From NCBI GenBank assembly GCA_965285935.1, contig OZ260663.1, forward strand, positions 59,086,001 through 59,150,000: a stretch of 64,000 nt of DNA, read 5' to 3'. A program made the translations under genes and the position numbers. Under the pieces are notes generated by a model. It had not been told where the DNA came from. It made no database searches and saw nothing but the letters and a program-made list of their open reading frames with translations. This DNA is from Ophelia neglecta (Eukaryota). Position 1 is the first letter of the stretch. Every line of letters begins with the position of its first letter. Positions 1,568 through 64,000 of this stretch are shown here, in pieces.

Positions 1568-1646
1568 ATGAGGCTGGATGCTGGTCCTAGACCTGTGTTA
1601 CACCTACTACTCCTATTGGCAGCAGCGACCACAGCACTTGCAGATG
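1568..1646 (+). CDS. Lar: LAR-type RPTP first coding exon: signal peptide MRLDAGPRPVLHLLLLLAAATTALAD (whole exon 1524-1646 including 5' UTR)
   Basis: Acceptor ctctctttcttaatgtgtcgtag|1524; ATG at 1568 with A at -3; hydrophobic core VLHLLLLLAAA and A-L-A cleavage motif; strong phase-1 donor GATG|GTGAGT, compatible with the phase-1 downstream exons. Not in the ORF track (too short). Confidence 0.85.
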
Positions 1647-4600
1647 GTGAGTACAGCTTTCATCTTTTTACTTGATATTTCTTATTTAGTATGACCCAGA
1701 ACTCTTTACCAAAGCATGAAGCCAGCATCAGGCCACTCTATTTTGCCACAGATGTCATGTATTTTAACCCTGTAAATATGGCCAGTAATTAAGAAAAGGG
1801 CTCTAGGGGCAGGCTTAGAATCTCCCTGGGGTGCAGAAATAACTAGCCTCACTGTAGCCCCAGCCTTAAGCCCTGAACATATTACATTAATTACTATACT
1901 AGAATGTGCACATGTTATGTACCAGCAGATAGTGCTATACCTGTATGTAGGAGAGTAAACAAGATAGTCAACTTAGCAGCTGTTCAAATATTTGCAAATC
2001 ACTGATACTAGGAAAACACAAAACCCTTTGTAGTGTAATCAAACTAGCCAAGCTACTAGCGAATATATATAGTGATAATCTTGTGATCTGTGGTTGGTCC
2101 CCTATCCAGGTACATCTGTTTTGATGCAGGGAACACAAAAGCTAAATGGTTTCCTTGTACATAGTTAACTGGTAGCTGAGTTAGTTTTATTTCTGGTTTA
2201 TTGTGTACATGTACAGATACACCTCCAGGTATAGTGGTTAAAAGATTCCAGATGTTAAAGGGCTAGTCATCTGGCTAGGCTTGCTGAGGCAAAATTAGAA
2301 GAATTTATAAACTCCCACTACTGGGTTTTCTACCACTATAGAAGCACTCTTCTAGAAGGTAATCTTACCTATCCCAAACCTTAATCACATTTGCATCTGA
2401 GCTCCCTTGGTCTGACCTTTCCCTCACAGTACCTGGTGAAGGAAACTTTCTGCTTGTAAATTGCCCTGTAGCAGCTTACCTTATTAACAAGCCGTTGGGG
2501 AGCTGTGATGGCAGGGGCAATAGCACACTGCTGGAGGCTCCCCTTTCTGTGCTGCCAGCGGAGTCTGGGTAGGCAAGATATCCAGCGGATAGCAGTGGGT
2601 CTGGCCGCTCTCTCCATATAAACAGACTGAGACCTTGTAGTCATATCCCACATTGTGTCAATATGGGTCTCTGCCCTCCCTGCCCCCTCTCATGTGGGGT
2701 ACATGCCATACCCCTGGCAACCTGCTGTGGAGACGCACCCCATACCTCCTCTGGCCAGATAGATCATGGTACAACATGTATTATACCTGAATGGGAAAAA
2801 ACCATGAAATGCTAATATTATAGGGGCTCAACTTTAGCCCTTATGTCCATTGCCACACTAGTCTCTAGTCAGGAGAGGGAATATGTCTCATACAGTAGTC
2901 CTTATAATGACTTCAGACAAGGTCAACACCTTTTTTTGTGTGCAGGTATCTCCTGCATTAACTGTAAATAAAATGTGCTGGCTTCACTCTTTGGATTAAA
3001 TAGTTCTCTGTGTGTATGTATATTTTGTTGTTTTACCAAGTGGTACCTTATCTGAAATTTATGTGCTTGCAACATGTAGAAATTCTTGTTAAATACAGAA
3101 TCCCTGTTTGCTTTTGAATGATAAATGGCTTACAGCCCACAGCTGACATATAATTCTGTTTATAGAGGACTTCGGTAAAGAAAATAGGAGAAATGGGAAT
3201 TATATTTGCTCGGTGGGAAGAAATATATAATTTGCCTGCAATAAAAAACTTGTCTGCAGCGAGCTGGTTCTGCTCACTATGACGTTAACCGTTAACTCAA
3301 GTAGAGAAAAATACAAAAGCATTCCAACTGCAATGTGGTATTTCTTATTCAGCCAATACACAATTATTCACCAAGTGGCTCTGAATGCTTAGTCAAAAAC
3401 AACACAGTGTAGTAACTAAATGTGCAGAATTATCTTGCCATATAAAGTGTGTATAAAGTACCTGTATATAAAATGTACACACAAGTATGGAAGTGGTTAT
3501 TAATATGCTATACCAACACTTCATGCCAGAAATCAATTTTTTGGCATCAACAACATATTTATGAATCAGCTCATTAATATTTTCGTGCAGTTAGTTGGTT
3601 TATGATGATTGAGATATACCATTCTCATTGTCACCGTTATAGCGAATGAGAGAGTGCTGCAGGCAATGAAACAATTGGCAGGTCTGTGTAGGTGATACAG
3701 TCACTTAGCCCCTGCTAGACTCCTGTTACAGGCCCTTCAGCTCTGTGTTTAGGTAGCTCACCACATCATGGCTGAAGCCCACTGCATTATATATATTATT
3801 AATATCACCACCATGACACCTGTCAGTTTTATTTAGCTCAACTATAAATGCACAAAATTAAACTCTTTGAATACATTATAAACGGAATTTAAACATGTCT
3901 AGTTCAATACATGGACATGATTTGGCATGATTTTTGTCTGTTATCAAATTTGACCTATATGTACACCAATAAAATTAAGATAGCATATACCGGTTGGAAG
4001 TATATTATCAGCTGTTATGTAGAGTGTAGTTTCCTATACATCCATGGTGGAACTTTTATATTAAAATGTTTAAGAACATAAACAAGGGATTTGCAGCACC
4101 ATGGGTTATACTTGATCGTTCTGGGATGTGTTACTGAAAAAAATCTTCAATACAGACACAAGTATATAAGCTCCTAGGTGACATAACATAACATCTATGA
4201 GATATTGTAATTCAATGATAAATATCTGTCAGTCGTGCGTTTTCCCACGCAGCTGCCAGCAGCCAGGTAGATTTGTACTGGTTAGCATTCTAAGAGGTGT
4301 ATGAGAATTTCAGGCAGTCTTGGCAGGGATATCACCTTTACTTTGATCACCCATTGATTGATGGAATGCTGGGCTGAGCCACCCTTTCTCAGCCCATGTA
4401 GCCACCCCAATCTGTCTGACTATCTTTTCCAGAGTGCCTTTGGAAAGACTGGAATCATGAATTAAAGATGTTTAAAATGCTTGCCAAGTTACCAGTATGC
4501 GGCCTAGATCAGCAACAGGGCAGTATTTTTTCTAACAAACATGTTAAGAGAAGACATTTTTTTGTGTTGATATACAATCTATTTTGCACATGGACATAGT

Positions 4601-7600
4601 GGCATAATAAGTGAATACCAACCTTGTATGTTGTAACCTCCTGCTACCAGGCAGAGCTAGTATACTGGAATTGGAATTTATATTGATTGGCATGATTCTT
4701 GTTTGACACAATATGTGAGTAAATGAGAGTGAGATTAATACCATGAGAACCAGTGAGTAGGCCTATTCATTCAGAAAGCCTATAGCTCCTTGCTAGATGG
4801 TCTCCTAATGACTGTACAAGACACATGCCAGGCTCAGTCATCTGCTGCCTCGCCTGATGGACTGGGAAAAGTGCCCTCAGCGCTAGGAGAGTGCCATCAG
4901 ACAGAGTGGGCATCAATTATTAATCTTGCCATTTATATCCATGACTGTGGTGCCAGACCAGCAGTCCATGTCCCAGAAACCACAGCCCCACCTTTCGCTT
5001 ATATTCACCTAATATAAACGCTCAGTACTAAGAACACTGAAATAATTTGTTAAATACATCAAAGTAGCCACCCGGTAGAATTGTATAGCCTCAGTGCTCA
5101 TAATGTACACTAGACTAGTGTGGCGGCATTCAGCGACATGGGTTGACATCAGGTATTCAGTGTGTTTATGAATTAGTACACCCTTGAACTGGATGTTGGG
5201 CTTCAGTTCTCGTAATGAGACTTCAGATTAATGTGGTGTCCATTATAAGTTGAAAACCTTTGGCATTCTCCTGCTCACTGGGGATTTTATTGTGGGTTTG
5301 TTGGCTCTTTATTCTGGGTTTGTTCTCCAAGTCAATGCTCTCTCTTTCCTATTATCAACTTGATGTGGGGCTTTGAAATAATTTTTGTGGAAGCTGTCAC
5401 CTATAACATGCCTCTGCATAAATAAGTTGACTGTTTGACACTGCATGTAACAAAATTTGTCTGTCTGCATCTGATCCAGGAAAAACTTTGAACTAGATTT
5501 AAAGGTGTATATACTAAAGTAATCACTATTGTAACTGTTACCTTTATAAGTTGGACTGGTTGTGGTCCCAACCGGTGGACAATTAATGTGTTTCAGAACC
5601 TTGTGTATTTGCATGGAACATGATAAACCTGATGATTCCTTGCAGACTATTTCTCAATGGAGGTCATGCCTTGTCTCAAGTTGTGTGAGGCCTACACTTG
5701 GATTGCTCCAAAAAATTTATTTTAAGCTAACTTAAGAGCCCGCACACAGCCCATCATTACCCAGAAATGTGGATGCAGGGGTGAAGAAATGCAGGAGAAA
5801 AGATGATTATTGTTAGGGCCTAAAGATGATTGCTGCTGATTGTGGGAGTCGTAAAATGAGCGCCCAAACATGTTATAGATATACAGGGGTCACAGTGTGG
5901 CGCAAGAGTGTTAAATGGGTACACAGACAAACCTGGGATTAAAATTGCCTGAGAAATCTCGCACTTGAATGCCACAATGTCAGCAGCTTCAAATTAAGTT
6001 TGGTTATGATGTTGCTGCATGGAGTTATATCTATTTGGTGTAGTAGACAAGGACACTATTTTCACTGTCGTATTAGTTATGTTATGATTATAGTCTCCCA
6101 GGTATTTAACGGTGGCTAGATCATATATCAACAATCACTAGAGGTCTGCACTCTAATCTAACTTATTTGTCTCCAAATTGATGGAGGAGCAACCTGAACC
6201 ATTACAAGACTCAAATCAAACAACACAATTATTGGTGTTTTCTGTAGAGTGTGGATATTGAGTTAGATTGTAAGCTAAGAGGGTGTTAATTAAAGATTTA
6301 GCATAGTATGAGGTAGCTGGGATGATGTAATTTTGAGCTCATAGGGTATAAACAGTTGATAATGGTGAAGAACAAGATTAAAAATTGGACAGATGTCCAT
6401 TAACTCACCTTTTCTTCCATCATAGCAGAAAGTTTAAGGCAGAGTAAACAGCTAGATCTCAATCAAATTGAAAAATGGTGGGCAGGATAAAGCAGTGTAA
6501 GATATTAAACAGAATATATTAGGAGATGGTGTTTTTTTCCCCCTGTATGCAGCCTATTACTGACTGTCGGTTGCAGTGTTATGTGGCCTATCTGTTGCTG
6601 CTGGCTGCCCATTATACCTGTAAAGGCAATCAACCATATTGCAATTTGCTCATCTGCTGATTGGTGGATCACATTTCCCTTGGTTGACTCAGTATGGATG
6701 TTCTGGGGATCTTCTTGTCAGATTTAATCAGGTGACTCAAAACTTGGCTCCCATTGCTGTCAAACTCAGTTACCTTATTCTCCTGGAGGTCACTTGAAAG
6801 GGAACAGAAGCCCACATTGTGTGCTGAAATTTCTCAAATTGTGGGGTTGTCATGAGTACACACCATGGAGCAGACATACTCAGAACCACGCCTCTTACTG
6901 AGCACTTCTTATCAGCACTGCTAATTTTTGCCCTAAGCTTCAATGTTCTAGGCAGTTGCTTTCATGAAGCCTGTCAAAAATGTTTCCGCTTAACTCGATC
7001 CAAAGGCAAATTGATTATTCCAAGGTTATTGTCTAATTAACCATTATTTTACGGCCACCATTTTATGAAAGTGGAGATTAAGTTTTACCTGCTGATGTAA
7101 AGCAATGCAATGTGTTAATAGTAAAAAATAAATAAAAAATATCATGAGAATTTGACAACTGATTCAGTGTTCAAGGATCAATCTATTTCAGTTGTAGATA
7201 TTGAGCTAGCTGGTCTTGGGAATCCTTCCTCGCGTCCGAAAATTTGTCCATTGACTACCAGCTAATGTTATTCTTGCCTTAAGGAATTGACCAGCCAGGC
7301 TTGTTAGCTCTTTTGATTGTGTTATACGCACCTCAGTAATTATATTTTCCAATAGCTACAAAGTTACATTTGTGAAATCTCAGAATTCCTACAATGCTGT
7401 ATATTTTATTTGGCAGACTTAGGAAATATTAGTAAATAATAAGATGGACTATGGCTGAGTGAAATAGGATATTCATACATACTCCACCAACCAAGGTATC
7501 AAACTTCATCCAAATGGAAGGCCTGATAGTCAAGCCATGTACCAAGTTTTGTTGCTGAAACCAAATAGAGGAATATGTGCATTGGATGGAAAATTTCAAT

Positions 7601-9857
7601 TTTTATCTGCTTTTCTCTAGTGAGCAGTTGGTAGGGAGTGTCTTGGAAGGCACAACAGTTGGTTTTTTAAAGTTGGTGAACCTTTCCTGGAAGTGGTAGC
7701 TATCTATCTGCATTATAAGCTAGCCCTTTGGCTACTGCCATGAAGATGATGGGAGATCCTAGGGCCAAAGATGTGTGTATTTGAGGCAAAGACACTGGCA
7801 GATTGGCTGGCTGCCTGCTCTGATCCCTGCCGAAGGCATAACAGAACCAAGAGGCAGTGCCTCTGTTATCACAGTTATTAGAAGCTGTAGCCTCTTGCAG
7901 AGGTTATCTTTATAGCTATTTATGTGTGTGGCTCCACTCTGTCCTTGCTTTCACAATATTAAATGCCTACTTGTCCATGACCCACTTTACCAGGCATTGG
8001 CCTGTTTAATAAGGCTTGTGTAGATTTGGAGCATATCCCAACCAGATAAAATGTTATACATTTTAATTTTTATTTGCCCATTGCCATTCCTTAGATGTAC
8101 AAGTGGCTACCGTAATTCACCTAAAGAAGACTAATGAACTTGTGTGCTAAACTGGGGGATGCATTATGTTTTGGAAAAAACAAACTCCCTTAATAATAAA
8201 TTTATCTAAAAATAAAAAATAAAACAGATATGGCCAGATATATGCATTCTTTAGTAGGTATGTGTCTCCTATTAAACCATTTACAGTAGAGTCAATATAG
8301 CATTGTCGGATTGAAGGTGCCCACGATTTACAGCTCATGGTAAACTTCTGAAGCCTCAAAGAATGGCTTCTATTGATTTTGTTCATCTTATGAAGTCTGG
8401 GTCATTGTGCCAGATATCTCAAACAATGAACCAGTGGAGTGCTGGCCATCACTCTCGTACAACCTACAAGCCAGTCAAGTGCTGACAATGAAGCACGGGG
8501 GTTTGGATAATAGTTTGGACAGTTCACTGTATTTTGACTGAAGTTGGTTCCTCCTTCATTCCTACCAACAATCAGGTCTGACAGGGATAGAAACAGGTAG
8601 ATTACAGCCTGGTCTGACTACAGCAGTTGTCTTCTGATCAGTTTTTATAATTCCCTGACTCACATCTGAATCTTGACATGCATGTCTGTAGATTCGGTAG
8701 ATGAATTGAAATGCTATCTTGTTACATGGCCCTTGTACAGTGTTGGGTAGATGGGAGCTGTCTGGTAGATTTTATGAAATGGCAAGAGCATGAGAACAAA
8801 TACCTGGTTGTTATAGTATTTTGTATCTTGTTACATGTACATGTACATTTATGTCTAGTATAAGCATGTAAAATGTCAGCACTAAAACATTGTGTTTTTG
8901 TGCTGGTGAGTGATGCTCTCTGCAGACCTTGTAGCATAATGAGGTTAGCAGTTTTGGCATGAGATCCAAATTAAAGGAGGTGTTGGAATATATAGCCAAC
9001 TGAATAATGAATGAACTTGTACAAATTCCACTACAGAGTGAGGCAGTGAGTGGCTGAATTGTTCATGCCAGGCTACCATTCATCAATGTAAGCCTGACTG
9101 CAGATTAGATTAATACACCACAAAATGTCATGTTGGAGAATTTTAAGGAAAACTTCAGCCCTACATATAAGAATTAAGATCCGCTAAGATAGCCCTGGGA
9201 ACTGGGCAAGGATACCAAACATGCTGTCCCATAGATCTTTATAAATGTATGATAACCCGGCAAGATATCCATTGTGATCCTTATTTATGATCCAGAATGG
9301 TTAAAGCACATTACCCTTGCTCTGCTGCTGAGTTATTGGTATTTTAGACCTAATTTTCTCCTGCTTACTGCAGGTGAATAGTCAGTGTTATTAATGCAAG
9401 TGGCGTAAGAGGCTGAGAAATTATGAAAATGGTTAGCCAAGAGACGAGGGAGTAAATTGACTGGAGTTGCCATTTTCTGCATATAAATTACCACACTTAA
9501 TATGGCACAATTTGGGGTAACATGGAGACAGTCATCAAACCAAATGAATGGCTCTTTTTAGAATTAAATGAGTGCCCGAAATCGCTGTTTGCTCCATGAG
9601 CACTTAAGTACTCAATATCCTGCACTTTTCTATCCAGTTTAAAAAATGTGCATTTACTTTTCCTCATTAAATTGTATTATAGTGGTTAGGACCTTTGTAG
9701 ATAGATGTAATATGCATAAAAGTGTAAATTTCGATCAGGATATTGTTTTGGTTACTACTTGATCCACTGTGATTTTGTAGGAATCCTATGTTATTTCTCA
9801 TTTTAGACAATTCCATTCTTCCTGTGGTCAGCTTTGGTTATTGAATCTACTGTGAGT

Positions 9858-10446
9858 GTGTTATTGGTCCTCTTAGCAGGGCCATATTACTGGTCCTTTC
9901 AGCAGGGCTGTATCAATGGTCCTCTCAGCAGGGCTCTATCAATGGCCCTCTCAGCAGGGCCATGTTACTGGTCCTTTCAGCAGGGCTGTGATACTGGTCC
10001 TCTCAGCAGGGCCATGTTACTGGTCCTCTCAGCAGGGCCATGTTACTGGTCCTTTCAGCAGGGCTGTGATACTGGTCCTCTCAGCAAGGCTGTGTTACTG
10101 GTCCTTTCAGCAGGGCTGTATCAATGGTCCTCTCAGCAGGGCTCTATCAATGGCCCTCTCAGCAGGGCCATGTTACTGGTCCTTTCAGCAGGGCTGTGAT
10201 ACTGGTCCTCTCAGCAGGGCCATGTTACTGGTCCTCTCAGCAGGGCCATGTTACTGGTCTTCTCAGCAGGGCTGTGTTACTGGTCCTTTCAGCAGGGCTG
10301 TGTTACTGGTCCTCTCAGCAGGGCCATGTTACTGGTCCTTTCAGCAGGGCTGTGATACTGGTCCTCTCTCGAAGGCTGTGTTACTGGTCCTTTCAGCAGG
10401 GCTGTATCAATGGTCCTCTCAGCAGGGCTGTGTTGCTGGCCCTCTA
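9858..10446. repeat. 26-bp minisatellite, about 22 copies (GGGCCATGTTACTGGTCCTYTCAGCA)
   Basis: Directly visible tandem array; produces the 26-aa periodic ORFs at 9834-10677. Confidence 0.95.
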
Positions 10447-11454
10447 GGGAAGGCTGAGTCACACCCTGAGTCAGCCCATTGTCCTTGTAGACCCACAGGG
10501 CATGGTGCCCCTAATTCAAGTCATTGCACAGCACCGATAAGCCTCCATCAAGCAATTTCTTACCTAATAAACAATTATACCACTTATGTTACTGCCAGGC
10601 TCATATGTGATTATTTATTTATTTTTGAACTGTCCAAAGGTGAGTTCTCTCATCTATATTTCCTAATTGATTATTAAGGGAGAACAGCTTTAAAGTTTCA
10701 CAGTATCTAATGGCATATTAGTAGTTCTGCTGTTGGTGTGGCTAGTGTTGGTGTCCTCCTTACTGCATGGGCTGTTGTGTAAGTCAAACTAAGTGACTTT
10801 CAACTTGATAAGGGTGTTCAAGGGGACAATGTCTACAGTCTCTTCTTGTTGTTTTGCTTCATCATTGATTGAACAACTAACTAGTGAGGGCTTCATGTGT
10901 AACTGTACAATAATATGTACCAGGAATATTGCAAAATCTTTCACCCCTTTTTTCTAATGTCAACTAATGTGCCAATAAATATCTTATTGTTTTTAATCAT
11001 TATTTCATTGGCTTTGTTAACAGAGAAGTACTGAATGAATGCTAGACTTTAAATATTATCACCTTAATTTCAGCAGTAATACCACTTCCCTTGATGTAAA
11101 ATTCACACTTGCTCTCGGGTGGCCAATAATTACACCACCAGATTCTATCAGCCAAAACAAGCTGGAGTCAAAGGGGTATTTGTTGAACTGGCTTTGCACA
11201 TTTTTACTGTCCAGGAGTCATGTAGTGGTCATTTGGGCAGACAGCCCAAATGTTTAACTTACACAGAGAAGCTTTTTATTACTTGCAACCAAGTCCAGTG
11301 GATAAGCAGTTGACAATTACCAATTATGTGTGGCTTAGATAAAATGACTTTTAAGTTATTAAGGATTCTTTTAATGTCTCTGACAATGCTGCCTGGTACT
11401 AGAATCTAAGTCCTGAATTCTTAGGTGAGTGCTTTAATGACTGCCACTGACTTG

Positions 11455-22186: not shown

Positions 22187-22345
22187 ATCCATCTCCGGCA
22201 CTGGCTGCTAACTCTGACCATGGGGCTGTGGGGGGTGTAGGGGGTCCAGAGGCCCCTGGGGCCGCTGACCAGCTAGCAGCTGGGGCTGCCACTCCTGGGG
22301 CCTCGGGCAACTTCACCCATTTCCGCTACATACAATACCTTACAC
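22187..22345 (+). CDS. Lar: Probable (alternative) exon encoding a 53-aa Gly/Ala/Pro-rich segment before Ig1: DPSPALAANSDHGAVGGVGGPEAPGAADQLAAGAATPGASGNFTHFRYIQYLT
   Basis: Branch point GACTAAC (22157-22163), acceptor tttgtccctgtacag|, donor CAC|GTAAGT; 159 nt, phase 1-1, no stop; GC-rich island in an AT-rich intron. Confidence 0.75.
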
Positions 22346-25174
22346 GTAAGTAGTGGTGTCCACCCCACTACTGCAACTGATTCCACCAGAGGGCTATGCA
22401 ACTCCTGGAGGCATCTGAAAATTGCCTGTTACTAAGTGTATACATTCAAAAATAATTTTACTTACAATTACTAATGAACAAATTCAAATATAAATGCAAT
22501 GACAAGCAATTTTATTTACCAACTTCTTAAAATACACACTCCTTTTGGCATATTGGTCTTTACTTCTGCTGGTCCCTCACCCACCACTGCAAGGGGTTAA
22601 TTTATCTGACAAGGTCCCACCTCCTCTCTTCAGTTCACATCAGACTTTCAGCCATTTCTACCACAAACATTGATTTAGGTTTGGGGCAGTTCATTTGGTG
22701 TGTGTGTTCAATCTTGATCTGATTGGTTTTGTACAATTTTACCCAAACTCTCCCTGGAGTCTTATTGAAAAACCTGAATGATAATTTAAATTATCTCCTA
22801 GTTTGCCAAAGGAGACTGGCTGGGAATGGAAATCAGGCCTGAGATATTTATATGGTATCAGTTTTTTTTGTAGATTTCTTTACAGTGTTTTGCCTCTAGA
22901 AATATATTCTTATTCCTTTCAAGATACAGATTTGTGATTTCTGTTAAATCAGCAGTCCTCTCAGAGGCCACTATTCAACATGTGAACGATTATCCCCAGG
23001 GGGTGATTTTATTCATAAAACTGCTCAAAGTAGTGACTCTGGCATCTTTGATAGTAATGTAAGCTTCTTCCCTCAGTCCCTGACATTTTAGTTTTGGTAG
23101 ACGCCTAGACAAGGTGGAAAAAAGCATTGAATGCTCAAGTCTGTCCTAAACTAAAGAACTACACATGGAAGAGAATTTGCTTGTTGTTCCTATCAGTTTC
23201 CCAAGATCTTGTAAAAACCCATCCCAATGTGATGTGTCTTGGTAGCTCATTGTTTTCAGGTTTCGTTCTTCTTGTTCTGTGGGGAGCAGGGTGAGGTGAT
23301 GGGCTCTGAGTTGGAGAATGGATAGGGTGTGAACAATATAAAGTAATTACCTTATGTACTATATTGTGCCTCCTCTTTAGGAGGTAATGTGCTTATGGGC
23401 CAAAAAGTATGTGGCCTGGAGCATTACATTTACATGTACAATATTGACAGCATATTTTATAGTGAGGGTATAGTCCAGCTCATTGCTTGCAGATTTGTTA
23501 CCTTTTAAGTCAGAATGATCCTGTTCCATTATGGGAGGCTGAGTAGGGTGTTCTGATCAAACCTATAACAATCAAATATTGTTTAATTGACACATCAAGT
23601 ACTTTTATAGCTGAATCCGATGTAGTCTGCTGTTGTAGTAAGCATCGAACAGGGAGTACCTGTGTTAGTGCTTGCTGCATCCAAAAATTTAAACTTGAGG
23701 TTTTTACTCTGTGATCAGAAAAAAAACTATGGGTAGAGTGGATTGGTCAACAAGAGATAATGTAGATATATCAGAGAAACCCTATCATGACTTCTTTAAT
23801 CTATAATTGTAAATCCTCTGGCTTTTAGTGTGCCTGTTTATGTATTTGATAATTAATATCCTCTTTTAGTGACATAGGTCATCATTTGTCTTTGAGTTGT
23901 CTGCCATCATTTCCTAGCTTTGGCATTATGGATTTCTCACAGGAAATTACTAATGGGCATCTTACGCTTGGTGCTTCATTGGAATCTATGTATGCTGCTG
24001 GAAGAAGGCCTGAAGAAAGATGTATAGGAAGCAGCAAGCCATGGGAAATCCCAGGGAAATAATGTCTCCTCTGTCAGGATAGAATTGTCCACTTCTGGAA
24101 TTTGCCCTGTCTATATTCCTGAAATTGATGACTCTGAGCCAAACTCCTCTGCCAAACAAGGTATAAAGGGTTGTTTTCTCAGACAATGAGAATATGTCTT
24201 GGCCTCTTGTTTACAGCAAGGATTGGGGCCCATGTCATGCCAGGAGCCATATTCTTTCTTCATACCACTGTTGTAGTTGTAGTGTAATAGTCACCTGGCT
24301 ACAAGCTCCCTGGAAGGAATGATGACATCAAGGACAAAAACAAAGAGCAATGTGGCCATTAGCCACTTCTAAAAGCAGCAGTACATAGCAGATCAGATAA
24401 CTACTCAGGTGTATATATTTTTTTCCAAGTCAGAATATGCCAGTCCAACAGGTGCTCAATGTTAATGGAACCTGTGGGAGACTGGCTGCAGGCAAATTAA
24501 TTTGGACATTGTGACTTGGGGACCTGGCCACAGATTCCCTGACACTCCTGAAGACCTCTAAGAGTGTCCAACTACAAGTCCTATCAGGAGCCTAAGCCAA
24601 ATATTCATATTAAAGATGTCTCGTGGGGATTGCCAGATGGTATATTATTATTGCCCATTTCAGTTTTATGTTTCCTTGTCAGTTAGTTGATGTTTTAGCA
24701 GTGTTGGGTGCCAGGGAGACATGTGGAGCGGCCTGGTGGCTGGGTAGCTCTTTGGTGTCTCTGCAGGCAGTGGTTATGTTCATTGAAGATGGTGGTTGGT
24801 GGTGGCTGTTGGCTTTGCCCTTAATTAACATGAATGATGCTTAAACATTAAAAACTCTCTGCTTTGTAAAAACACAGGGTGCAAATTTTTGTCCCATTAC
24901 TGAAGTAGATTACATGTCATACAAATTTATAGAGGTCTGTCAAAGCCTGATAGCAATATATCAGTTCCCTTGAGGCTCATATTCATAGATTATCAATCTA
25001 GGAAGGTTTTCATTTCAGAGTGGGACTTAAATGTGCACACAATATGTTTCAATTTTCCACATGGCAATCTTCTATTTCAGAAAATACAGCTGGTTGGAAT
25101 TCTATTTTATCACCTGGTCTCTAATCATTCTTCTTTTTAAATCTGCTGTAACCTGGTTTTCTGTATATTTTCAG

Positions 25175-25474
25175 ATGCCCCACGGATAACGCTGGCCCCC
25201 AGGGACCAGAAGGTGGTGGAGAATGGCATCATCAGCTTCTTCTGCAAGGCGTCTGGCAACCCAAGTCCGGACATCCACTGGAGAAAGGGAGGAAAGAGAA
25301 TCACCGCCAATCGCCAGCGCTACATCATGGTGGACATGCCCCATGGGTCAGTACTGCGCATGGAGCCAGTCAAGCCGAGAAGGGACGACAGTGTCTTTGA
25401 GTGTTATGCAGACAATGGCATAGGAGAGCCAGCCACGGCCTCTGCAAAATTGGAGGTGTACCCTGAAGGTCAAG
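25175..25474 (+). CDS. Lar: LAR RPTP exon, Ig domain 1 (APRITLAPRDQKVVENGIISFFCKASGNPSPDIHWRKGGKR...FECYADNGIGEPATASAKLEVYPEGQ)
   Basis: Ig I-set C/W/C pattern and LAR-specific motifs SFFCxASGNPxP, GSVLRxEP, FECxAxN; ttttcag| and CAAG|GTGAGC; 300 nt, phase 1-1. Confidence 0.97.
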
Positions 25475-40696: not shown

Positions 40697-40870
40697 TTCC
40701 TAGTGGATACCCAAGAATCACCGAAAGTCCTACGTTAAAAGCTGTGGAGAAGGATAGAAACACGGTGATGATCTGTGGTGCGAACGGAAACCCTGATCCT
40801 ACAATCATCTGGCTGAAAGACTTCATTCCAGTAGACCTTTCTGATCCCAGGCTTAAACTACTGGATACTG
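40697..40870 (+). CDS. Lar: LAR RPTP exon, Ig2 N-terminal half (VPSGYPRITESPTLKAVEKDRNTVMICGANGNPDPTIIWLKDFIPVDLSDPRLKLLDT)
   Basis: Resembles LAR Ig2 (PxGxPxI...PxLKxVE...GNPDPxIxWxKDFxPVD); ctacag| and ACTG|GTAATG; 174 nt, phase 1-1. Missed by the ORF track. Confidence 0.95.
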
Positions 40871-41454: not shown

Positions 41455-41565
41455 GAGCCCTTCAGATCCGACACAGCATGGAGTCTGATGAAGGAAAGTA
41501 TGAATGTGTTGCTGAGAACAGTGCTGGCGTCGCCTACTCGTACGGAGCCAACTTATATGTCCGAG
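41455..41565 (+). CDS. Lar: LAR RPTP exon, Ig2 C-terminal half ([37 protein letters not shown])
   Basis: Hallmark GALQI..SxESDxGKYECVAxNSAG..ANLYVR; ttgttacag| and CGAG|GTGGGT; 111 nt, phase 1-1. Confidence 0.96.
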
Positions 41566-43825: not shown

Positions 43826-43906
43826 TGCCGTCCACTCTGTCACCGCCACCAACCACCACCAAAACGTCCTCGTTCAGGAGAAACCATCCTAATATCACTG
43901 GTTCAG
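43826..43906 (+). CDS. Lar: Candidate cassette exon in the Ig2-Ig3 linker (VPSTLSPPPTTTKTSSFRRNHPNITGS)
   Basis: Branch point TTCTAAC 43804-43810, pyrimidine tract ccacttttccttag|, donor TCAG|GTATCC; 81 nt, phase 1-1, open frame; ACTAAC cluster downstream. Confidence 0.65.
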
Positions 43907-44557
43907 GTATCCATCCACGTCTTGAGAATGTCGCCCGAATGCTAACTCTACTAACACACTAACCCCACTGTGTGTAGTTGATATACTGGTCGGTTTACTG
44001 AGGTTTGGTACGTCCCCTAGGTGGGTGTGTGACACACTAGGTGAATGTCTCCCTCCTACTAATATGGAACTCACATGTTTTCCTAAGAAGTTCTCCTGAA
44101 TGATCAGTGTGGATTCTTGTAATTGTAGTTTGAAATCAGTTACATTATTAAAAGTCTAAACAGTATTCAGTTAATTTTATAATATATTTTCTATTGCAAT
44201 TTCAATAGTCTTTTGATTTATTTTTGAGAACACTTTACAAGAACTTGATTCAATATATTACTTAATATTTGATTGATTGCTAGCCAGTAAATTGTTTATC
44301 AACTGGATCTATATGTTGATAGATTTATAGGACATGGGATGTTATTAATTATAATGACACTCATTTATATGATAAATAAATTTGCTCAATGCAAAATGAT
44401 AAGGATTATATAGGAATGGACCATATCTGTACTTGTCTGAAGATGAAAAATCAGAAATTGTTGTCTTTTTGCTGCCTAAACATTTCATCTTTGTGCTGTA
44501 TGTTTCTTAAAATGGTTATAGCCTATAGAAATTTCAGGTTAAATATCACCCATTTCC

Positions 44558-45011: not shown

Positions 45012-45281
45012 TGAGAAGAGTTCCACCTCACTTCTCCATCCCACCGGAGAGCGCTGAGGTGATGCCAGGGGGCGCTGTTAATCTGACCTGCGTAGCAGTC
45101 GGCTCCCCTATGCCTTATGTCAAGTGGAGGCTGGGCGCCGTGGAGCTCACTCCCGAGGACAGCATCCCCATTGGCAAAAACGTCCTGATGTTAACAGACA
45201 TCCGGGAGTCGGCCAACTACACCTGTGTGGCAGCATCGGACCTCGGCAACATAGAGGCCATCGCGCAAGTCAAAGTCAAAG
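45012..45281 (+). CDS. Lar: LAR RPTP exon, Ig domain 3 ([39 protein letters not shown]...[24 protein letters not shown])
   Basis: Closely matches the LAR-family Ig3 signature VRRVPPxFSIPP/[17 protein letters not shown]; ctccag| and AAAG|GTAGTT; 270 nt. Confidence 0.98.
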
Positions 45282-46167: not shown

Positions 46168-46455
46168 CATTACCGCAACCGCCCACAAGTCTAGTTATCT
46201 CTGAGGTCACTGCCACTTCGGTCAAACTGACCTGGAATTCGGGCAATGTTGATCCCGTAGAATCGTACGTCATCCTGTACAAACGTAAATATGCCCCAGG
46301 GGCCACGCATGACGAAATCACTGACATAACCAGCAGTGAGTACACCGTCATGGGGCTCAATGCGTACATGCAATACGAGTTCAAAGTGATAGCGGTCAAT
46401 AACATAGGCCGCGGTATTCCCAGTAACCCTGTAGATGTCACCACCGGAGAGTTGG
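46168..46455 (+). CDS. Lar: LAR RPTP exon, FN3 repeat 1 (ALPQPPTSLVISEVTATSVKLTWNSGNVDPVESY...GRGIPSNPVDVTTGEL)
   Basis: FN3 W/Y/Y pattern, LAR-like TATSxxLTWxSGNxDPVxxY; gctccag| and TTGG|GTTAGT; 288 nt. Confidence 0.97.
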
Positions 46456-47131: not shown

Positions 47132-47143
47132 ATATGCAAATGG
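47132..47143 (+). CDS. Lar: Candidate 12-nt micro-exon (DMQM) between FN3-1 and FN3-2
   Basis: cccatttaataccttcacag|ATATGCAAATGG|GTATGT; consensus sites on both sides; phase 1-1, frame preserving. Confidence 0.55.
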
Positions 47144-47441
47144 GTATGTGCTATATCAACAATGCCAACCTTTGGTGCCTTGACACATTAGAGACTTGTT
47201 TATTCGTCTGTACCGTACTTAACACTACTGCTGCCACTACTACATGTTATTCCTATGTACTTTGTACTTTTTGTCATTAATCACTTGGCTACCATGTTTA
47301 TTTAGCATTGGTTGAATACACAGCTGGTGGACATAGTCTAACTCATTCTACTGTAAATCCTCTTGATTTTGCAGTCGGAATGAATATTGGCAAAGCATCG
47401 CGCTGTTGGATTAGAATGATTGCCATTGCACTTTAGCCTGT

Positions 47442-48851: not shown

Positions 48852-48952
48852 CACCTGGGAGTCCACCGCAAATTGTACGGGCAAGACCCGTGAGCTCCAG
48901 CACTGTGGTTGTCCAGTGGGATGAACCTGCCTTCCCCAATGGAATCATCAGG
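48852..48952 (+). CDS. Lar: LAR RPTP exon, FN3 repeat 2 first part (APGSPPQIVRARPVSSSTVVVQWDEPAFPNGIIR)
   Basis: ccttacag| and CAGG|GTAAGA; 101 nt, phase 1-0; LAR FN3-2 motif. Confidence 0.96.
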
Positions 48953-49167: not shown

Positions 49168-49363
49168 GGATACAAGGTTTACTATACATTAAAACCTGAC
49201 TTACCTTACTCCCTGTGGACCTTGCACCCAGTGGACAATAGTCAGCTGACCACCATCAGCAACCTGCTCACCAACCGCACCTACACCATCCGGGTGCTGG
49301 CCCACACCATCGTGGACGATGGTCCACTCTCAGATCCTATCCAGGTCAAAACTCAACAAGGAG
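49168..49363 (+). CDS. Lar: LAR RPTP exon, FN3 repeat 2 second part (GYKVYYT...DGPLSDPIQVKTQQG)
   Basis: gtttcag| and GGAG|GTAAGT; 196 nt, phase 0-1; GPLSxPIQVKTQQG signature. Confidence 0.97.
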
Positions 49364-50804
49364 GTAAGTGTATAGATGAAAGACTTCTAATTACTAGTGG
49401 CTTTGCTAGGCATTGTGCGCTTGCCTAACATTGTGTGGAGTTTTTATATTCACATGTATATGGTAAGTGTAAACTCCGTGGAGAAATACAGGATGTGGCA
49501 GACTTAATTTTAATTGTTGATAAAATAGGCTTTTACTAACAAGTGAATTGTGTTCTGTGATCATCAATGCTGTTAGTATATGATGTGTGTGAAAGGCACT
49601 ACTAGAGCATCTAAATATTTTAGTCCTACCACTGGTGGAACAGATTTTGTCATCACTTGGGTGGAGGGTGTTAGGTAGGAGTGCAGATTTGCCGTTTTTT
49701 CACCTATTGTCATCTTAAAATAGCAGGCAAACTACGACTTCAAGTAGTACAAGTACATAGGACATCCTGGATACCTTTTTTTTTCCTGTGACCTTAAACT
49801 ACGAAATTCTCCCCAGATTTTAATGAGAGCTGATGCAATTTCTTCTTCCTCACTGTTTTTATCATATACATTACCAGACTGGCATATGGGTGGAAGTTTA
49901 GACCTCTGACCAATCTCAATTCTGATCAGCAGGCCATTGATAAGTTATAGCATTTGCCTATGAGCTATCTAAAGGGCTATTCTCAGATAAATATCTTTAT
50001 TACAAACACCAAAAGTCTCAATATAACTGTTATTAGAGACAATTATAAGTCACCCTAGAGTCTGATTTTCTATTTTTCTCATAATGCCATTAATTCCTGA
50101 TCATTGGTCCTCTGCTAGCTGTTACCATACATTAGATAGCCAAGACAGTAAATGAATTATTATTCCACTCATCAGGTGCCTTGATTGTATAAGATAGTCA
50201 GCGTGAAGGTAGTGAATGCTCGTATAGCCTGAGGGTAGATCAGAATATGAATTTACAGAAACAATAATATCACTGCAATTCTTAATAAAACAAAGGTCTG
50301 GTCACTTGTGAAGTTAAAACCTGCAATCAATGTGTGCTGTGATTTGGCAGTTCAGGACATTATTCCTGTGGGCAATTTCTAAGCGAGAAGTGTATGTAGT
50401 CAGAGAGGCCAAAATGGAATTAAGTTTTCTTGTTATGTTGTATGACTGTGGTTGTTCCCTTTGCTTGCGACTAGTATAATTGTAACCACTGTGATGTTGA
50501 CCGTGACAATGGCTGCTAACATTTATGTGTAAAATTGTGCAGGAAGCTACTTGAAAATGAGTTATAAAAAATTCAGTTTTTACAATGTTTTGGAAATTCA
50601 TAATAAGTTTTCTTATAATAAAATATTGTTATTATACTTACCTCATGGGATTAGGATATTCCATCTCTCCATATATATGTATTTTGTATAATTATGTACA
50701 TGAACATGAACATTGTTGCAAATTAATACACATTGACTAACTTTCTGAAGACTTCCAATAACATTGGTTACATGAGTCTGTCCTATCTAAAACATCTGCT
50801 TGCT

Positions 50805-51385
50805 AGACTGTCTGTCAGTAATGTGCTTCTGTCAGTCTTATATCAAGGCTTGCTGTCTTGTCAGTGCCTCACTGTCTGTCAGTGCCTCACTGCCTGTCAG
50901 TGCCTGCTGTCTGTCAGTGCCTCACTGTCTGTCAGTGCCTCACTGCCTGTCAGTGCCTCACTGTCTGTCAGTGCCTCACTGCCTGTCAGTGCCTCACTGC
51001 CTGTCAGTGCCTCACTGTCTGTCAGTGCCTCACTGTGTGTCAGTGCCTTGCTGTCTGTCAGTGCTGTGCAGTCTGTCATTCACAGTGCTGCCTTGTTAGT
51101 GATGTGCTGTCTGCCAGTGATGTGCTGTCTGTCAGTGATGTGCTGCCTTGTCAGTGCTGTGCTGTCTGTCAGCACCATGCTGCCTTGTCAGTGATGTGCT
51201 GCATTGCCAGTTTTGTGCTGTCTGTCAGTGCTGTGCTGTCTGTCAGTGCTGTGCAGTCTGTTAGCACTTTGCTGCCTTGTCAGTGATGTGCTGCATTGCC
51301 AGTGATGTGCTGTCTGTCAGAACTGTGCTGTCTGTCAGTGTTATGCTGTCTTATCAGTACTGTACTGTCTGTCACTGTCCCAGAC
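50805..51385. repeat. 18-bp minisatellite (GTCAGTGCCTCACTGTCT, grading to GTCAGTGATGTGCTGTCT)
   Basis: Directly visible; explains the [18 protein letters not shown] periodic ORFs. Its last 88 nt (51298-51385) recur at 52109-52196. Confidence 0.95.
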
Positions 51386-54174: not shown

Positions 54175-54198
54175 AGATCCGTAAGGGCATATTTGACC
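54175..54198 (+). CDS. Lar: Candidate micro-exon with two in-frame donors (6 nt EI; 24 nt EIRKGIFD) in the FN3-2/FN3-3 linker
   Basis: Branch point TACTAAT 54120-54126, acceptor cccccag|54175, donors |GTAAGG at 54181 and |GTAAGT at 54199; both lengths are multiples of 3. Confidence 0.5.
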
Positions 54199-54871
54199 GT
54201 AAGTAACCCTCACACTGTCTGTGTGTCTGTGTTTCTGTGTGTACACCCTCTGTTTCAGGACCAAGAGGTCACCATATTGACAGCTAGGACTCAGCAATCA
54301 GCCATACCACTCTTTGTCATGCATGCTATGTTGTCTAAGACTAACTCATCGGTATTTCACAAGAAATCTGAATTTCTTACAGTTTGTTTAATTTCACCTA
54401 TTTGTTCCTTGCATATTCCTTTCTATTAATATATGTAGTTTTAAGTCTCTCCGCTCGAGACCAATGTTACAATTACTTATACCGATATTCATCTGATTCT
54501 TATAAGTAAACTTTGATTGTGTTTGTAATTTCAATTTTATAACTACACTGTGAGTAAAGAATTTGTTCCATGTTGCCAATGATAAAACATAGAACTAAGT
54601 ACCTACATGTTCAGAAGGAGGAGGGGCCAACTGTTACTATAGTTTAATTTAGTTTGTGGAGAAAAGCCCAACAGTTGCAGCCTCATGTTATGTCCGTCCT
54701 CTGATCTGTTTTGTACTACTTATTCTTGGTTCCATCTTATGTGTATCCATATATGTTGACTGTATATCCAGCTTCCAAGGATGGGCTGTGCGGCTCATTT
54801 TTGCGACGTATTGTACCATATTAACCGTGTAATTTTGCTCTATTTTGAATGGCACCTTCAATTGTCTGCAG

Positions 54872-54880
54872 GTGGTCCAG
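54872..54880 (+). CDS. Lar: Candidate 9-nt micro-exon (GGP) in the FN3-2/FN3-3 linker, or the 3' end of a longer alternative first exon
   Basis: ttcaattgtctgcag|GTGGTCCAG|GTGAGA; strong CAG|GTGAG donor; phase 1-1. Confidence 0.5.
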
Positions 54881-56419: not shown

Positions 56420-56707
56420 TGCCAGAGCAGCCCACTAACTTACAGGGGGAGTCCAGCTCTCCCAACTCGATCCAGCTGACCTGGGACCCGCCCGAGGACT
56501 CCGGGGAGAGTATACAGAGCTACGAGCTGTATTACAATGACTCCCACTTCCGTCAGAATGTCCGCATCACCATCTCGCCACCTAGGAACACCTACCTTCT
56601 GGAGGATCTGACCCCCGACACTGTGTATCACATACGGGTGGCGGCCAAGTCCCTTAGAGGGGAGGGGGCCAGCACGCCCACCATACAAGTCAGGACTCTG
56701 GAGTATG
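56420..56707 (+). CDS. Lar: LAR RPTP exon, FN3 repeat 3 (VPEQPTNLQGESSSPNSIQLTWDPP...GEGASTPTIQVRTLEY)
   Basis: ttgttacag| and TATG|GTAAGT; 288 nt; FN3 pattern. Confidence 0.97.
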
Positions 56708-59008: not shown

Positions 59009-59317
59009 TCCCCAGTGCCCCGCCCCAGAATGTGCGTGGGGTGGCCCTAGACTCTACCAGCATCGAGGTAAGCTGGGAGCCCCCACCCAAGGCCGCCCAG
59101 AATGGTGTCATCTCTGGCTATAAGCTGCTCTACACCGACCAGGCCAGCAACCAGGGTCCTGAGGAGGCCACTGCGCTCACCGTAGGCGCCACTGAGCTTA
59201 CACTCGCCATACGCGAGCTGCAAAAGTGGACGCCCTACAAGATCTGGGTGTCTGCATTCACGCAGGTCGGGGATGGGCCTCTCAGTGATGTCATCGTCGT
59301 CCAGACAGACGAGGACG
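59009..59317 (+). CDS. Lar: LAR RPTP exon, FN3 repeat 4 (VPSAPPQNVRGVALDSTSIEVSWEPP...VGDGPLSDVIVVQTDED)
   Basis: ccatccag| and GACG|GTATGT; 309 nt; LxKWTxY and VGxGPxS..TDED signatures of LAR FN3-4. Confidence 0.97.
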
Positions 59318-59417
59318 GTATGTAACCGCGGCAACCAGCCACTACTACAACTACTACTCCACTGGGTGATTGGGATGATTTACAACAAGGTTGCTGTGTT
59401 CGCTCATGTCCTCCCAC

Positions 59418-59973
59418 ACTAACACCCAACGCAAAAGGGAATGTGTTGAGTTTTGTAAAGCTTTTGTCTCAAATTCATTGGCTACCAAGGAGAATCTGCC
59501 AGTCACCATAAAATTGTATACTTATATGGTTTGGGTTGCAAAAAAACATCCCTTTTAGATTTCCTTGTTATTTCCTACTTTTCAAATAATGTTTATGGTG
59601 GCTTGAAAGCTTGGATACTCCACTCATTTAATGAGGTTTTGGTTGAGTTTTGGTGTGAGGACAGAGTTTTGTTTCCCACAGACTTGTACATATACTGCAA
59701 CGGCTGAATGTGGGATCGATAAAGACTGTGTGATTACTACTAACAACACTACTAACTTTCCATTCAACCCCTTCCCTCTGCTAACCTTCCTGCACCATGA
59801 CTGCTTCAGACATGCATACTACTACCTTTATGTGCTATCATCCTTGCTTTTCTATGGTAATTACTAATGCTAGAATTTCACCCGTGTTACTACTAACCTG
59901 AGTAGTAAGGCGCCACACCACCTGGCTCACTGGGAATGTCCACTCACTTTTCACCTGCTGTTCAAATACTAAC
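59418..59973 (+). promoter_or_regulatory. Cluster of ACTAAY (Quaking/STAR-family or SF1-type) RNA motifs downstream of the FN3-4 exon
   Basis: ACTAAC at 59418, 59739, 59751, 59892 and 59968, ACTAAT at 59863, GCTAAC at 59780. Confidence 0.5.
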
Positions 59974-61555: not shown

Positions 61556-61867
61556 TACCAGGAGAACCTCGGAAGGTCAAGTTGGAAGCTATCAACTCTA
61601 CCGCAGTGCTGGTAGAGTGGCGGCCCCCCTCCATCAAGGAGCAGAATGGCATCATCCGAGGCTTCCAAATCCACTACGTCATGATCAATGACCAAGACCA
61701 GCCCATTGGCCAGCCAGGCATGTTTGACCTAATGGACGGCAGTAAGTCAGACGTCATCATCGGTGGCCTTCGACCTGATGCCTCCTATCAGTTCCAAGTG
61801 GCGGCCTACACCCGGAAAGGTGATGGAGACCGCAGCAAACCCCGCAATGTCAAAACTAAAGGAGCAG
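61556..61867 (+). CDS. Lar: LAR RPTP exon, FN3 repeat 5 (VPGEPRKVKLEAINSTAVLVEWRPP...VAAYTRKGDGDRSKPRNVKTKGA)
   Basis: cattacag| and GCAG|GTAAGA; 312 nt; PRKVxxEAxNST and AAYTxKGDGxRSKP signatures. Confidence 0.97.
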
Positions 61868-62568: not shown

Positions 62569-62766
62569 TTCCGAGCTCCCCGCGGGGTTTGCAGCTGTCA
62601 CTGAACCAGGAGGACCCTCCGTTGGTCCTAGCTACATGGCAGGTCCCTCGAAATACCCACGGCAGCATCCTCAGCTACAAACTTACCTATGGAATACAGG
62701 GAGAGAGTTCAGTGGAGGAACGCAGGCTGGATGAGGAGAAATATAGGTTTACCACAGGATTCCTTG
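62569..62766 (+). CDS. Lar: LAR RPTP exon, FN3 repeat 6 first part (VPSSPRGLQLSLNQEDPPLVLATWQVP...KYRFTTGFL)
   Basis: cctcctgccag| and CTTG|GTTAGT; 198 nt, phase 1-1. Confidence 0.93.
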
Positions 62767-63136: not shown

Positions 63137-63229
63137 AGAAAGGAGCGGTATATGAATTCCGCATTTCTGCCAGGAATTCGGTAGATTTTGGTGAGCAGGC
63201 CGTGGAAACCATTCGGACGCCGGATGGAA
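63137..63229 (+). CDS. Lar: LAR RPTP exon, FN3 repeat 6 second part (EKGAVYEFRISARNSVDFGEQAVETIRTPDG)
   Basis: tatttcag| and GGAA|GTGAGT; 93 nt, phase 1-1; KGAxYxFRxSARNxVxFGE motif. Confidence 0.94.
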
Positions 63230-63828
63230 GTGAGTCTTGCCCTATTTCCACCCCACCGGTGAACTGTAGGGCGCGCCCTCTACTGGGCTGTATAGGTGTC
63301 TCAGCCGTTTGGCAGGAAGGAGGCACATTGCACACATACCCATCTGCATCTTCACCGATGTCGGTCCCCTATTGAGTTGTTTCTTGAGTTTGCTTCATTT
63401 GGCCTAGCATTTGGTTGTATTGAGTTGGTTACACTTTAGTTTGCCCTCCCAGTTTTTGTTTTCTCTATGCGAATACTGCATAGGGAGGAAGGAAGGAGAG
63501 CCAACCACCTCATGGCAAGAAACCTGTAGCAGCAATCAAGTGCCTTACATTACCAGTTTCACACAGAAACAATATGAAAGCACTGCTACAGTCCAGCTCA
63601 CTTATTAGTTGATCTAGCTAGCAGTTCAATGTAATTTTTCCGTTTCACATAATATTTTGATGGTTGTGTGTATTAGAGATGCCATTATTTTGACAACCAT
63701 CACTGAAGTGCCCCAGAGAGCTAATGTTATAAATTTCAACTAGAAAATGCCCAGAGAATTAAAACATTGCCTAATTTTGAGCGGCACTTCAGGACGATAA
63801 ATGGCATGTAATAATATGATATTGTCAT

Positions 63829-63945: not shown

Positions 63946-63968
63946 TTGTTTTCTTTTTTCCCCAACAG

Positions 63969-64000
63969 TCCCTAGCGGAGCACCCCAGAACTTCACGGCA
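63969..64000 (+). CDS. Lar: LAR RPTP exon, start of FN3 repeat 7 (IPSGAPQNFTA...), truncated by the window end
   Basis: Long pyrimidine tract ttttcttttttccccaacag|; PSGxPQN FN3 start, in frame with the previous exon. Confidence 0.9.

Follow-up and report, generated by a model that had tools for sequence, protein, structure and literature searches.

Candidate alternatively included exons at inter-domain linkers of an annelid LAR receptor gene

A stretch of 64,000 nucleotides (nt) of the Ophelia neglecta genome (GenBank assembly GCA_965285935.1, contig OZ260663.1, positions 59,086,001 to 59,150,000 of the forward strand; hereafter the window) holds a gene that homology identifies as the 5′ ectodomain part of a type IIa (LAR) receptor tyrosine phosphatase, with a signal peptide, Ig1 to Ig3 and FN1 to FN6. 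Besides its domain exons, at least four extra frame-preserving exons appear to lie in phase-1 introns of this gene and are most likely alternatively included cassettes: one of 159 nt upstream of Ig1 (22187-22345), one of 81 nt between Ig2 and Ig3 (43826-43906), and a pair of micro-exons of 24 and 9 nt between FN2 and FN3 (54175-54198 and 54872-54880). Comparison with other genomes indicates that all four are kept as coding exons under selection, and homologous inserts are optional in relatives. The mini-exons of vertebrate receptor-type protein tyrosine phosphatases of the LAR family (LAR-RPTPs) represent the textbook splice code by which a presynaptic receptor chooses its synaptic partner. 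An earlier note on the window had proposed extra exons at its inter-domain linkers, an FN3 linker among them, and in this it was right, since the FN2/FN3 pair is real by conservation.

On the window sequence alone, the list of candidates is indistinguishable from noise. All seven in-frame exons proposed in the earlier note have AG/GT borders and lengths divisible by three, but its description of their splice sites as consensus was overstated, as several are weak, among them the acceptor at 54175 and the donor at 54259. When splice sites were scored with a crude matrix calibrated on the 12 real exons, 70 phase-1-open AG..GT segments of at most 200 nt and of a length divisible by three reached the thresholds of the weakest candidates in the same introns, and a strict filter was passed by 22187-22345 and 54872-54880 alone. 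Segment lengths leaving a remainder of 0, 1 or 2 on division by three were equally common (259, 253 and 217). With some 70 equally good pseudo-exons in the same introns, AG/GT borders and a preserved frame by themselves prove nothing. Two intronic minisatellites, at 9807-10677 (GPCYWSFQQGC.. units) and 50727-51290 (CLSVPH/SVSASL units), stay open over long distances in several frames and account for many false pseudo-exon candidates.

The comparison set comprised three other annelid genomes (Capitella, Ridgeia and a closer relative from ENA, hereafter the ENA relative) and isoform sets from 12 protostome species. Comparing orthologous introns, a check that the earlier note had suggested, supported four of its candidates as conserved exons and left the others unsupported or ambiguous. 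The four exons named above are thus supported by comparison and 47132-47143 is ambiguous, while no relative compared contains a counterpart of 54175-54180 or 54259-54267; three to four of the coordinates originally listed were wrong. A tblastx search of the orthologous introns found the pre-Ig1 exon and a 19-nt element in the FN1/FN2 intron; the smallest exons escaped it and came to light through motif and donor-anchored searches. In the FN3/FN4 and FN4/FN5 introns, donor-anchored screening with 32,523 comparisons yielded no conserved candidate. The supposed stop-containing exons at 29963, 45984, 59682 and 63484 dissolved into acceptor-like sites, accompanied by a good donor only for 29963-29986, and short-word blastn against the Capitella and Ridgeia loci detected no conservation at any of them; for the 29963 site, the search went no further than blastn-short against these two whole loci, with no approximate matching. 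Nothing in the analysis supports stop-containing exons or the secreted decoys that the earlier note had considered possible.

The pre-Ig1 cassette (22187-22345, + strand, phase 1-1) encodes an Ala/Gly/Pro-rich segment with an N-F-T sequon that ends in GASGNFTHFRYIQYLT; its phase-1 reading runs ..AAGAATPGASGNFTHFRYIQYLT, and the residues before the junction codon read GNFTHFRYIQYLT. Inclusion of the cassette is predicted to give His (C|AT) at the junction codon, and skipping to give Asp (G|AT). The Capitella genome contains a counterpart exon of 147 nt, likewise of phase 1-1 (L001 14638-14784), which lies about 400 nt upstream of the Ig1 exon, ends in ..ANGTNQYRYIQYLT|gtaagt (also given as ..AAAAAAAANGTNQYRYIQYLT|gtaagt) and is recovered by tblastx with the window cassette (L001 14631-14801, E=4e-6). 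It is absent from the model of the Joint Genome Institute (JGI) for this gene (P0152, L001 10001-11526), which has a doubtful N-terminus, ..LLLRSIQYIAEYE, and also lacks both FN2/FN3 micro-exons found in its genome. In the annelid-like Logan transcripts P0408 and P0156, the sole difference is GNNSTQYRYIQYLR, with the same His/Asp switch at the junction as the window predicts.

Alignment with the 12 species, molluscs and Lingula among them, places this cassette in a wider family. It is alternative in the isoforms of Liolophura, two species of Haliotis, Octopus, Lingula, Biomphalaria, Physella, Tachypleus and Parasteatoda, with segments of 13-23 residues in the molluscs, Lingula and the Logan pair. 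Among the chelicerates, Tachypleus isoforms X1/X2 differ from X3 and Parasteatoda X1/X4 from X6/X7, and Centruroides carries the cassette in all sampled isoforms. The end of the cassette conforms to a conserved motif, GN-x-T-x-[FY]R[YF]I-x-Y-L. Under the definition of a protostome pre-Ig1 cassette that we drew from these isoform sets, namely phase 1-1, an end of the form G-[ND]-x-[ST]..[FYR]-[RA]-[YF]-[IV]-x-[YF]-[LV] and a switching junction codon, the window exon belongs to the class. No amphioxus, hemichordate, brittle-star, locust or bird protein that was sampled contains the motif. The ENA relative (L004 to L006) was excluded from the pre-Ig1 comparison, as the upstream walk ended without Ig1 within 19.6 kilobases (kb) of Ig2a. 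Since chelicerates, molluscs, a brachiopod and annelids share the cassette and splice it alternatively, it is to be regarded on comparative grounds as an old protostome cassette and not as a novelty derived in this lineage.

Between FN2 and FN3, micro-exon 1 (54175-54198, + strand, 24 nt) encodes (E)IRKGIFD plus a split codon, and micro-exon 2 (54872-54880, + strand, 9 nt) reads GTGGTCCAG, that is (G/R)GP. In the window, Capitella, Ridgeia and the ENA relative, both are found in the same order within the same FN2b-FN3 intron, 536-1225 nt apart. Micro-exon 1 encodes VLDIGIFD in the ENA relative (L003 3656-3679), AISITGLFD in Capitella (L001 23421-23447) and VLRGIFD in Ridgeia (L002 15551-15571); the corresponding forms of micro-exon 2 are CCGGTCCAG (L003 4297-4305), GTAGTCCAG (L001 23983-23991) and ATAAACCAG (L002 16796-16804). 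In all four genomes the first exon ends in G[IL]FD, and the second keeps its 9 nt and ends in CCAG, followed by gtgaga. The length of micro-exon 1 varies between 21 and 27 nt, and most differences between its codons fall on the third position (GGC ATA TTT GAC, GGC ATT TTT GAC, GGT CTG TTT GAT). The ENA relative is 94 % identical to the window in FN3 at the amino acid level, yet its introns do not align with those of the window. The string CCAGGTGAGA occurs once in the 64-kb window, where 0.12 occurrences are expected, and once each in L001, L002 and L003, always at the 9-nt exon. Of some 1,190 loose + strand candidates in three loci, a single non-orthologous segment has the ending [GP][ILV]FD; this is 23000-23053 in the intron between the pre-Ig1 cassette and Ig1, an AG..GT segment with weak sites that ends in ..SGIFD and is probably a chance match.

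Alternative FN2/FN3 inserts of the same kind are present in mollusc isoforms: APIFD+VGPT, APIFD+AGLP, AGPP, KPVIFD+QS in Octopus and a 20-residue insert ending in PQPIFD. Inserts of the ..PIFD type occur in both gastropods and cephalopods and xGPx-like ones (AGPP, VGPT, AGLP) in gastropods, and in the nemertean Lineus all eight isoforms carry an FN2/FN3 insert. No vertebrate or arthropod sampled has an insert at this linker. If the pair is defined, as we do here, by a first exon ending in [GP][ILV]FD and a second encoding x-G/S/K-P before V-P-x-Q-P, the window pair is of this type, and the pair can be taken as ancient and common to annelids and molluscs. The earlier view of a code derived independently in this lineage is thus contradicted at both of these sites. 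At 24 and 9 nt, the two exons also fall within the frame-preserving size range, up to 27 nt, of the neural micro-exons regulated by SRRM/eMIC. By eye, a TGC precedes both window micro-exons and most orthologues, a 3-mer that chance would place there about half the time. Downstream of the GIFD micro-exon, a GT-rich run, TGTCTGTGTGT, is seen at a distance of 20-45 nt in the window (54199-54245) and in Capitella (L001 23448-23500); neither Ridgeia nor the ENA relative shows an obvious one.

The Ig2/Ig3 cassette (43826-43906, + strand, 81 nt, phase 1-1) lies in the intron that harbours the mini-exon meB in vertebrates and encodes (V)PSTLSPPPTTTKTSSFRRNHPNITGS, a Ser/Thr/Pro-rich segment with an N-I-T sequon. 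Phase-1-open, S/T/P-rich counterparts occupy the same intron in the ENA relative (63 nt, L004 5615-5677), Ridgeia (57 nt, L002 8021-8077) and Capitella (27 nt, L001 20086-20112), and an N-x-T sequon is found in the window and Capitella exons. A GAATGT hexamer follows the cassette donor by 13-20 nt in all four genomes; in the window it lies on the + strand at 43926-43931, 19 nt after the donor. The window matches the pattern AGGTAN{8,25}GAATGT only once, at this donor, and L001, L002 and L004 match it at their counterpart donors. Among the relatives, alternative Ig2/Ig3 segments occur in Lineus and Haliotis. Support for this cassette is good, and we rate it below that for the other three exons because the flanking pattern was defined post hoc.

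The intron between FN1 and FN2 contains a conserved 19-nt element (47132-47150, + strand), ATATGCAAATGGGTATGTG, which consists of the proposed 12-nt exon ATATGCAAATGG, whose peptide would be DMQM, and the adjoining GTATGTG and includes the octamer ATGCAAAT. It is identical at 19 of 19 positions in the orthologous Capitella intron, the sole non-exonic blastn match below E=0.01. A strong polypyrimidine tract lies directly upstream in both species, and a donor consensus terminates the conserved block. The Capitella element is preceded by GA instead of AG, with no in-frame acceptor upstream. The 19-mer is absent from Ridgeia and the ENA relative, and the sampled lophotrochozoan, deuterostome and horseshoe crab isoforms have no FN1/FN2 insert. 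We conclude that 47132-47150 is a conserved element whose status as an exon is ambiguous. A copy of ATATGCAAATGGGTATGTG with two mismatches occurs 16 kb downstream on the opposite, minus strand (63333-63351; 0.02 expected), and the two would be complementary in the pre-mRNA. In the spider Argiope bruennichi, isoforms P0278 and P0295 differ by DYRTEP at FN1/FN2, and this linker is thus alternatively spliced in at least one arthropod.

Isoform sets from RefSeq were aligned within each species, and the window exon peptides were aligned singly to their homologues. In these sets, the extra exons are combined with each other and with the skipping of whole FN1 and FN4 exons, the latter being seen in the isoforms of most species (molluscs, Lingula) and, for FN1, in seven relatives. 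Homologous inserts have accordingly been visible in RefSeq models of other species all along, and the splice code is not hidden, as had been claimed. The two closest Logan transcripts, P0153 and P0156, are without FN4 and, like the Capitella model, lack all linker inserts. Among models and transcripts of annelids, the inserts are missing from P0152 (Capitella), P0303 (Ridgeia) and P0153 (Logan), and the pre-Ig1 cassette is present in Logan P0408 only. The FN1 and FN4 exons of the window are symmetric (1-1) and could be skipped likewise. Other alternative sites were noted in relatives. An alternative Ig1/Ig2 segment of about 10 residues is confined to molluscs, and the corresponding micro-exon (..NPWVVKYE) has no counterpart in the window, Capitella or Ridgeia. 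In Lineus longissimus (P0352, P0349, P0348), two alternative exons of 28 and 5 residues are found in Ig2 at the position of the vertebrate mini-exon meA, together with an alternative 11-residue insert at FN4/FN5.

Could the listed small exons be chance AG..GT pseudo-exons in long introns that are never spliced in? The 70 comparable phase-1-open segments, the missing excess of lengths divisible by three and the isolated status of 54175-54180, 54259-54267 and the stop-containing sites all speak for such an origin. However, the four conserved candidates retain both frame and splice sites across genomes between which the introns otherwise fail to align, and for three of them protein isoforms of other phyla contain matching alternative inserts, which makes pure chance very improbable as their explanation. 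Alternatively, the conserved islands may have a regulatory role within the introns, for instance as enhancers or as elements that silence or enhance splicing, and not be exons. This would fit the 19-mer at 47132-47150 above all, given the GA that precedes it in Capitella, its absence from two of the genomes, the missing insert at this linker and the minus-strand copy; its polypyrimidine tract, terminal donor consensus and the DYRTEP variation in the spider point the other way. At the other four exons, variation follows codons, lengths stay divisible by three and the peptides recur in isoform models, and we consider a regulatory role in place of a coding one unlikely overall.

The conserved exons might instead be constitutive in O. 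neglecta, leaving no room for combinatorial choice. Centruroides, with the pre-Ig1 cassette in all sampled isoforms, and Lineus, with its FN2/FN3 insert in all eight, illustrate such a state. By contrast, P0153 and P0156 lack every linker insert, P0408 differs from P0156 by the pre-Ig1 cassette only, and most annotated relatives have each insert in some isoforms and not in others, so that constitutive use appears improbable. Alternatively included cassettes are the reading we prefer, and several observations weigh against it. For this species the evidence is genomic, and inclusion, alternative use and tissue specificity are predictions. The RefSeq isoforms are computational models supported by RNA-seq and not cloned cDNAs. 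The splice sites of 54175-54198 and 43826-43906 reach mediocre scores; conservation of the Ig2/Ig3 cassette extends to position, composition and a flanking 6-mer and not to peptide sequence, and the pattern AGGTAN{8,25}GAATGT was formulated after seeing the data. Finally, an AlphaFold2 model of the cassette-bearing N-terminus of P0408 assigns no confident fold to the cassette, and Ig1-Ig2 are predicted with confidence (mean predicted local distance difference test score, pLDDT, 87.6). On balance, we infer that alternative use in this species is most likely and that inclusion may be regulated, perhaps in a neuron-specific manner.

If the four exons are cassettes, they would be skipped by default in this species, because the nearest transcripts lack them. 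The pre-Ig1 exon would then extend the N-terminus by a low-complexity, N-glycosylatable tail and place a conserved aromatic motif beside Ig1, and the Ig2/Ig3 exon would lengthen and glycosylate the linker at the vertebrate meB position. At the FN2-FN3 hinge, the 24-nt exon would contribute 8 residues and the 9-nt exon 3, so that combinations of 3, 8 or 11 additional residues could arise. Together with skipping of FN1 and FN4, these exons may give rise to many ectodomain isoforms, and their inclusion may change ligand binding or ectodomain geometry. More tentatively, and with somewhat more doubt than confidence, we propose that protostome LAR receptors have their own ancient splice code apart from meA-meD, which would consist of a glycosylated N-terminal cassette predating the chelicerate-lophotrochozoan split and an FN2-FN3 hinge module predating the annelid-mollusc split, both regulated, probably in neurons, and changing ligand binding at Ig1 and how far, or at what angle, the ectodomain reaches.

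Vertebrate LAR-RPTPs carry the mini-exons meA in Ig2 (ESI/GGTPIR), meB between Ig2 and Ig3 (ELRE or DQRE), meC in FN5 and meD in the juxtamembrane region (PMC8711739). Their inserts set the choice of ligand (PMC8711739, PMC10883964), as does meB at the Ig2-Ig3 linker (PMC8711739). As controls, our alignments recovered meA (RSGGTPIRG) and meB (ELRE and DQRE) at the known vertebrate sites. The two systems concern the same receptor family, both use short frame-preserving ectodomain exons, and the meB intron is used in both. At this intron, which agrees in position and phase, the window exon has 81 nt and encodes 27 unrelated S/T/P-rich residues, in contrast to the 4 residues of meB; it does not qualify as a meB exon and is at most a possible homologue of it. 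The window also has an intron at the place of meA (..LLDTG | ALQIRH..) but no exon of the meA type: its 584 nt contain four loose candidates, none of them conserved, and the Capitella intron measures 54 nt. A counterpart of meC is lacking, as FN5 of the window is uninterrupted. Conversely, the vertebrate isoforms sampled have no counterpart to the pre-Ig1 and FN2/FN3 sites, the best conserved in the window.

Further parallels exist to the skipping of FN3 domains and to neural micro-exons. Vertebrate LAR skips domains FN4-7/8, and a 9-residue exon in Fn5 abolishes laminin-nidogen binding (PMC2133008). Symmetric 1-1 FN3 exons are common to this case and the window, and the Fn5 exon sets a precedent for a tiny insert that changes ligand binding; the vertebrate protein loses a block, FN4-7, whereas the protostome relatives skip FN1 and FN4. 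With the SRRM3/4-dependent eMIC micro-exons of 3-27 nt, the FN2/FN3 pair has in common its size of 9 and 24 nt, the preserved frame, a synaptic adhesion receptor as host, deep conservation and a conserved flanking intron. The eMIC programme is neuron-specific and SRRM-dependent, with a UGC-containing enhancer just upstream of the 3′ splice site, and the window exons would be candidates for it at most. The RefSeq Lar-like models of molluscs, Lingula, Lineus and chelicerates have homologous pre-Ig1 and FN2/FN3 inserts in some isoforms only and are automated annotations. In the literature searched, we found no publication that describes these invertebrate LAR splice sites, nor an account of a comparable code in invertebrate LARs.

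What is new here are invertebrate LAR splice sites without vertebrate use; the inserts themselves were already contained in automated RefSeq models. Should the proposed ancient code hold, combinatorial LAR splicing would be an ancestral bilaterian strategy that is realised at different sites in each lineage. Retention of 9-nt and 24-nt exons from annelids to molluscs and of an N-terminal cassette from chelicerates to annelids suggests strong selection on such short sequences, and adds deeply conserved non-vertebrate members to a class of micro-exons regarded as largely confined to vertebrates. These exons are lacking from current annelid gene models, and the exact coordinates given here may serve work in animals amenable to experiment, among them Capitella, Platynereis, Aplysia, Octopus and spiders.

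The assignment of the gene to the LAR family, as the earlier note had it, is borne out by Pfam, PDB matches and full-length relatives. All searches were performed exon by exon, without joining the exons into a spliced model. Pfam recognizes Ig domains on Ig1, Ig2a/b and Ig3 and fn3 on FN1-FN6, giving the order of three Ig domains followed by FN3 repeats, and the exon order is collinear with full-length Lar proteins. Against the PDB, Ig3 ranks PTP-delta and PTP-sigma at the top (E ~1e-50; phmmer E 6e-50 to PTP-delta Ig3), with DSCAM and Robo at ~1e-20. Ig1 finds its best structural matches in PTP-delta, PTP-sigma and Drosophila Lar, and the best PDB matches overall are PTP-delta, PTP-sigma and LAR, so that the LAR family is closest among Ig/FN3 receptors. 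The closest full-length proteins stem from the annelid Capitella teleta, from Lineus longissimus, a nemertean, and from two Logan transcripts (60-87 % identity per exon), followed by molluscs and Lingula; by these matches the gene belongs to a lophotrochozoan, most likely an annelid, and not to human. Exon-level searches of ENA, Logan and NCBI assemblies retrieved genomic fragments that are 91-97 % identical in FN3, and the protein of the window itself was not found in the protein collection searched. A representative search with the FN5 exon, its ranking dominated by giant multi-FN3 proteins, was useful only for choosing P0012 as a bridge to named relatives. The window, which contains no runs of N, ends in the intron after FN6b; the full-length relatives P0152 and P0153 carry PF00102 twice (D1/D2 phosphatase).

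The gene lies on the + strand, as do all of its exons. Translation is predicted to start at the ATG at 1568 in the signal-peptide exon (1568-1646), which encodes MRLDAGPRPVLHLLLLLAAATTALAD and the first base of a split codon and ends in phase 1 at a GTGAGT donor. It is followed by Ig1 (25175-25474), Ig2a and Ig2b (40697-40870 and 41455-41565, the halves of Ig2, with the intron at the vertebrate meA position 3′ of the first), Ig3 (45012-45281), FN1 (46168-46455, symmetric 1-1), FN2a (48852-48952, phase 1 to 0), FN2b (49168-49363, phase 0 to 1), FN3 (56420-56707), FN4 (59009-59317, symmetric 1-1), FN5 (61556-61867, a single 312-nt exon without an internal intron), FN6a (62569-62766) and FN6b (63137-63229). 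The domain-boundary introns are all of phase 1, in agreement with the earlier note, which had described almost all of them so, and the intron inside FN2 alone is of phase 0. Nearly every ectodomain module is hence a symmetric phase 1-1 exon, an architecture that is ordinary for Ig/FN3 receptors and unremarkable in itself.

A few minor features of the window remain to be described. The Ig1 exon has a second in-phase donor at 25468, 6 nt upstream of its end (25462-25480, GAAG|GTCAAG|GTGAGC); if this proximal donor were used, Gly-Gln would be lost from the Ig1-Ig2 linker, and the distal form is the one to which homologues align. Past its donor, FN6b keeps an open reading frame for a further 143 nt (63230-63372). 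No Rfam family matches the window. As to the clusters of ACTAAY branch-point sequences reported previously, TACTAAC is mildly enriched (15 occurrences, 8.8 expected), and four exact heptamers fall within 236 nt of the FN4-FN5 intron (59738-59973).

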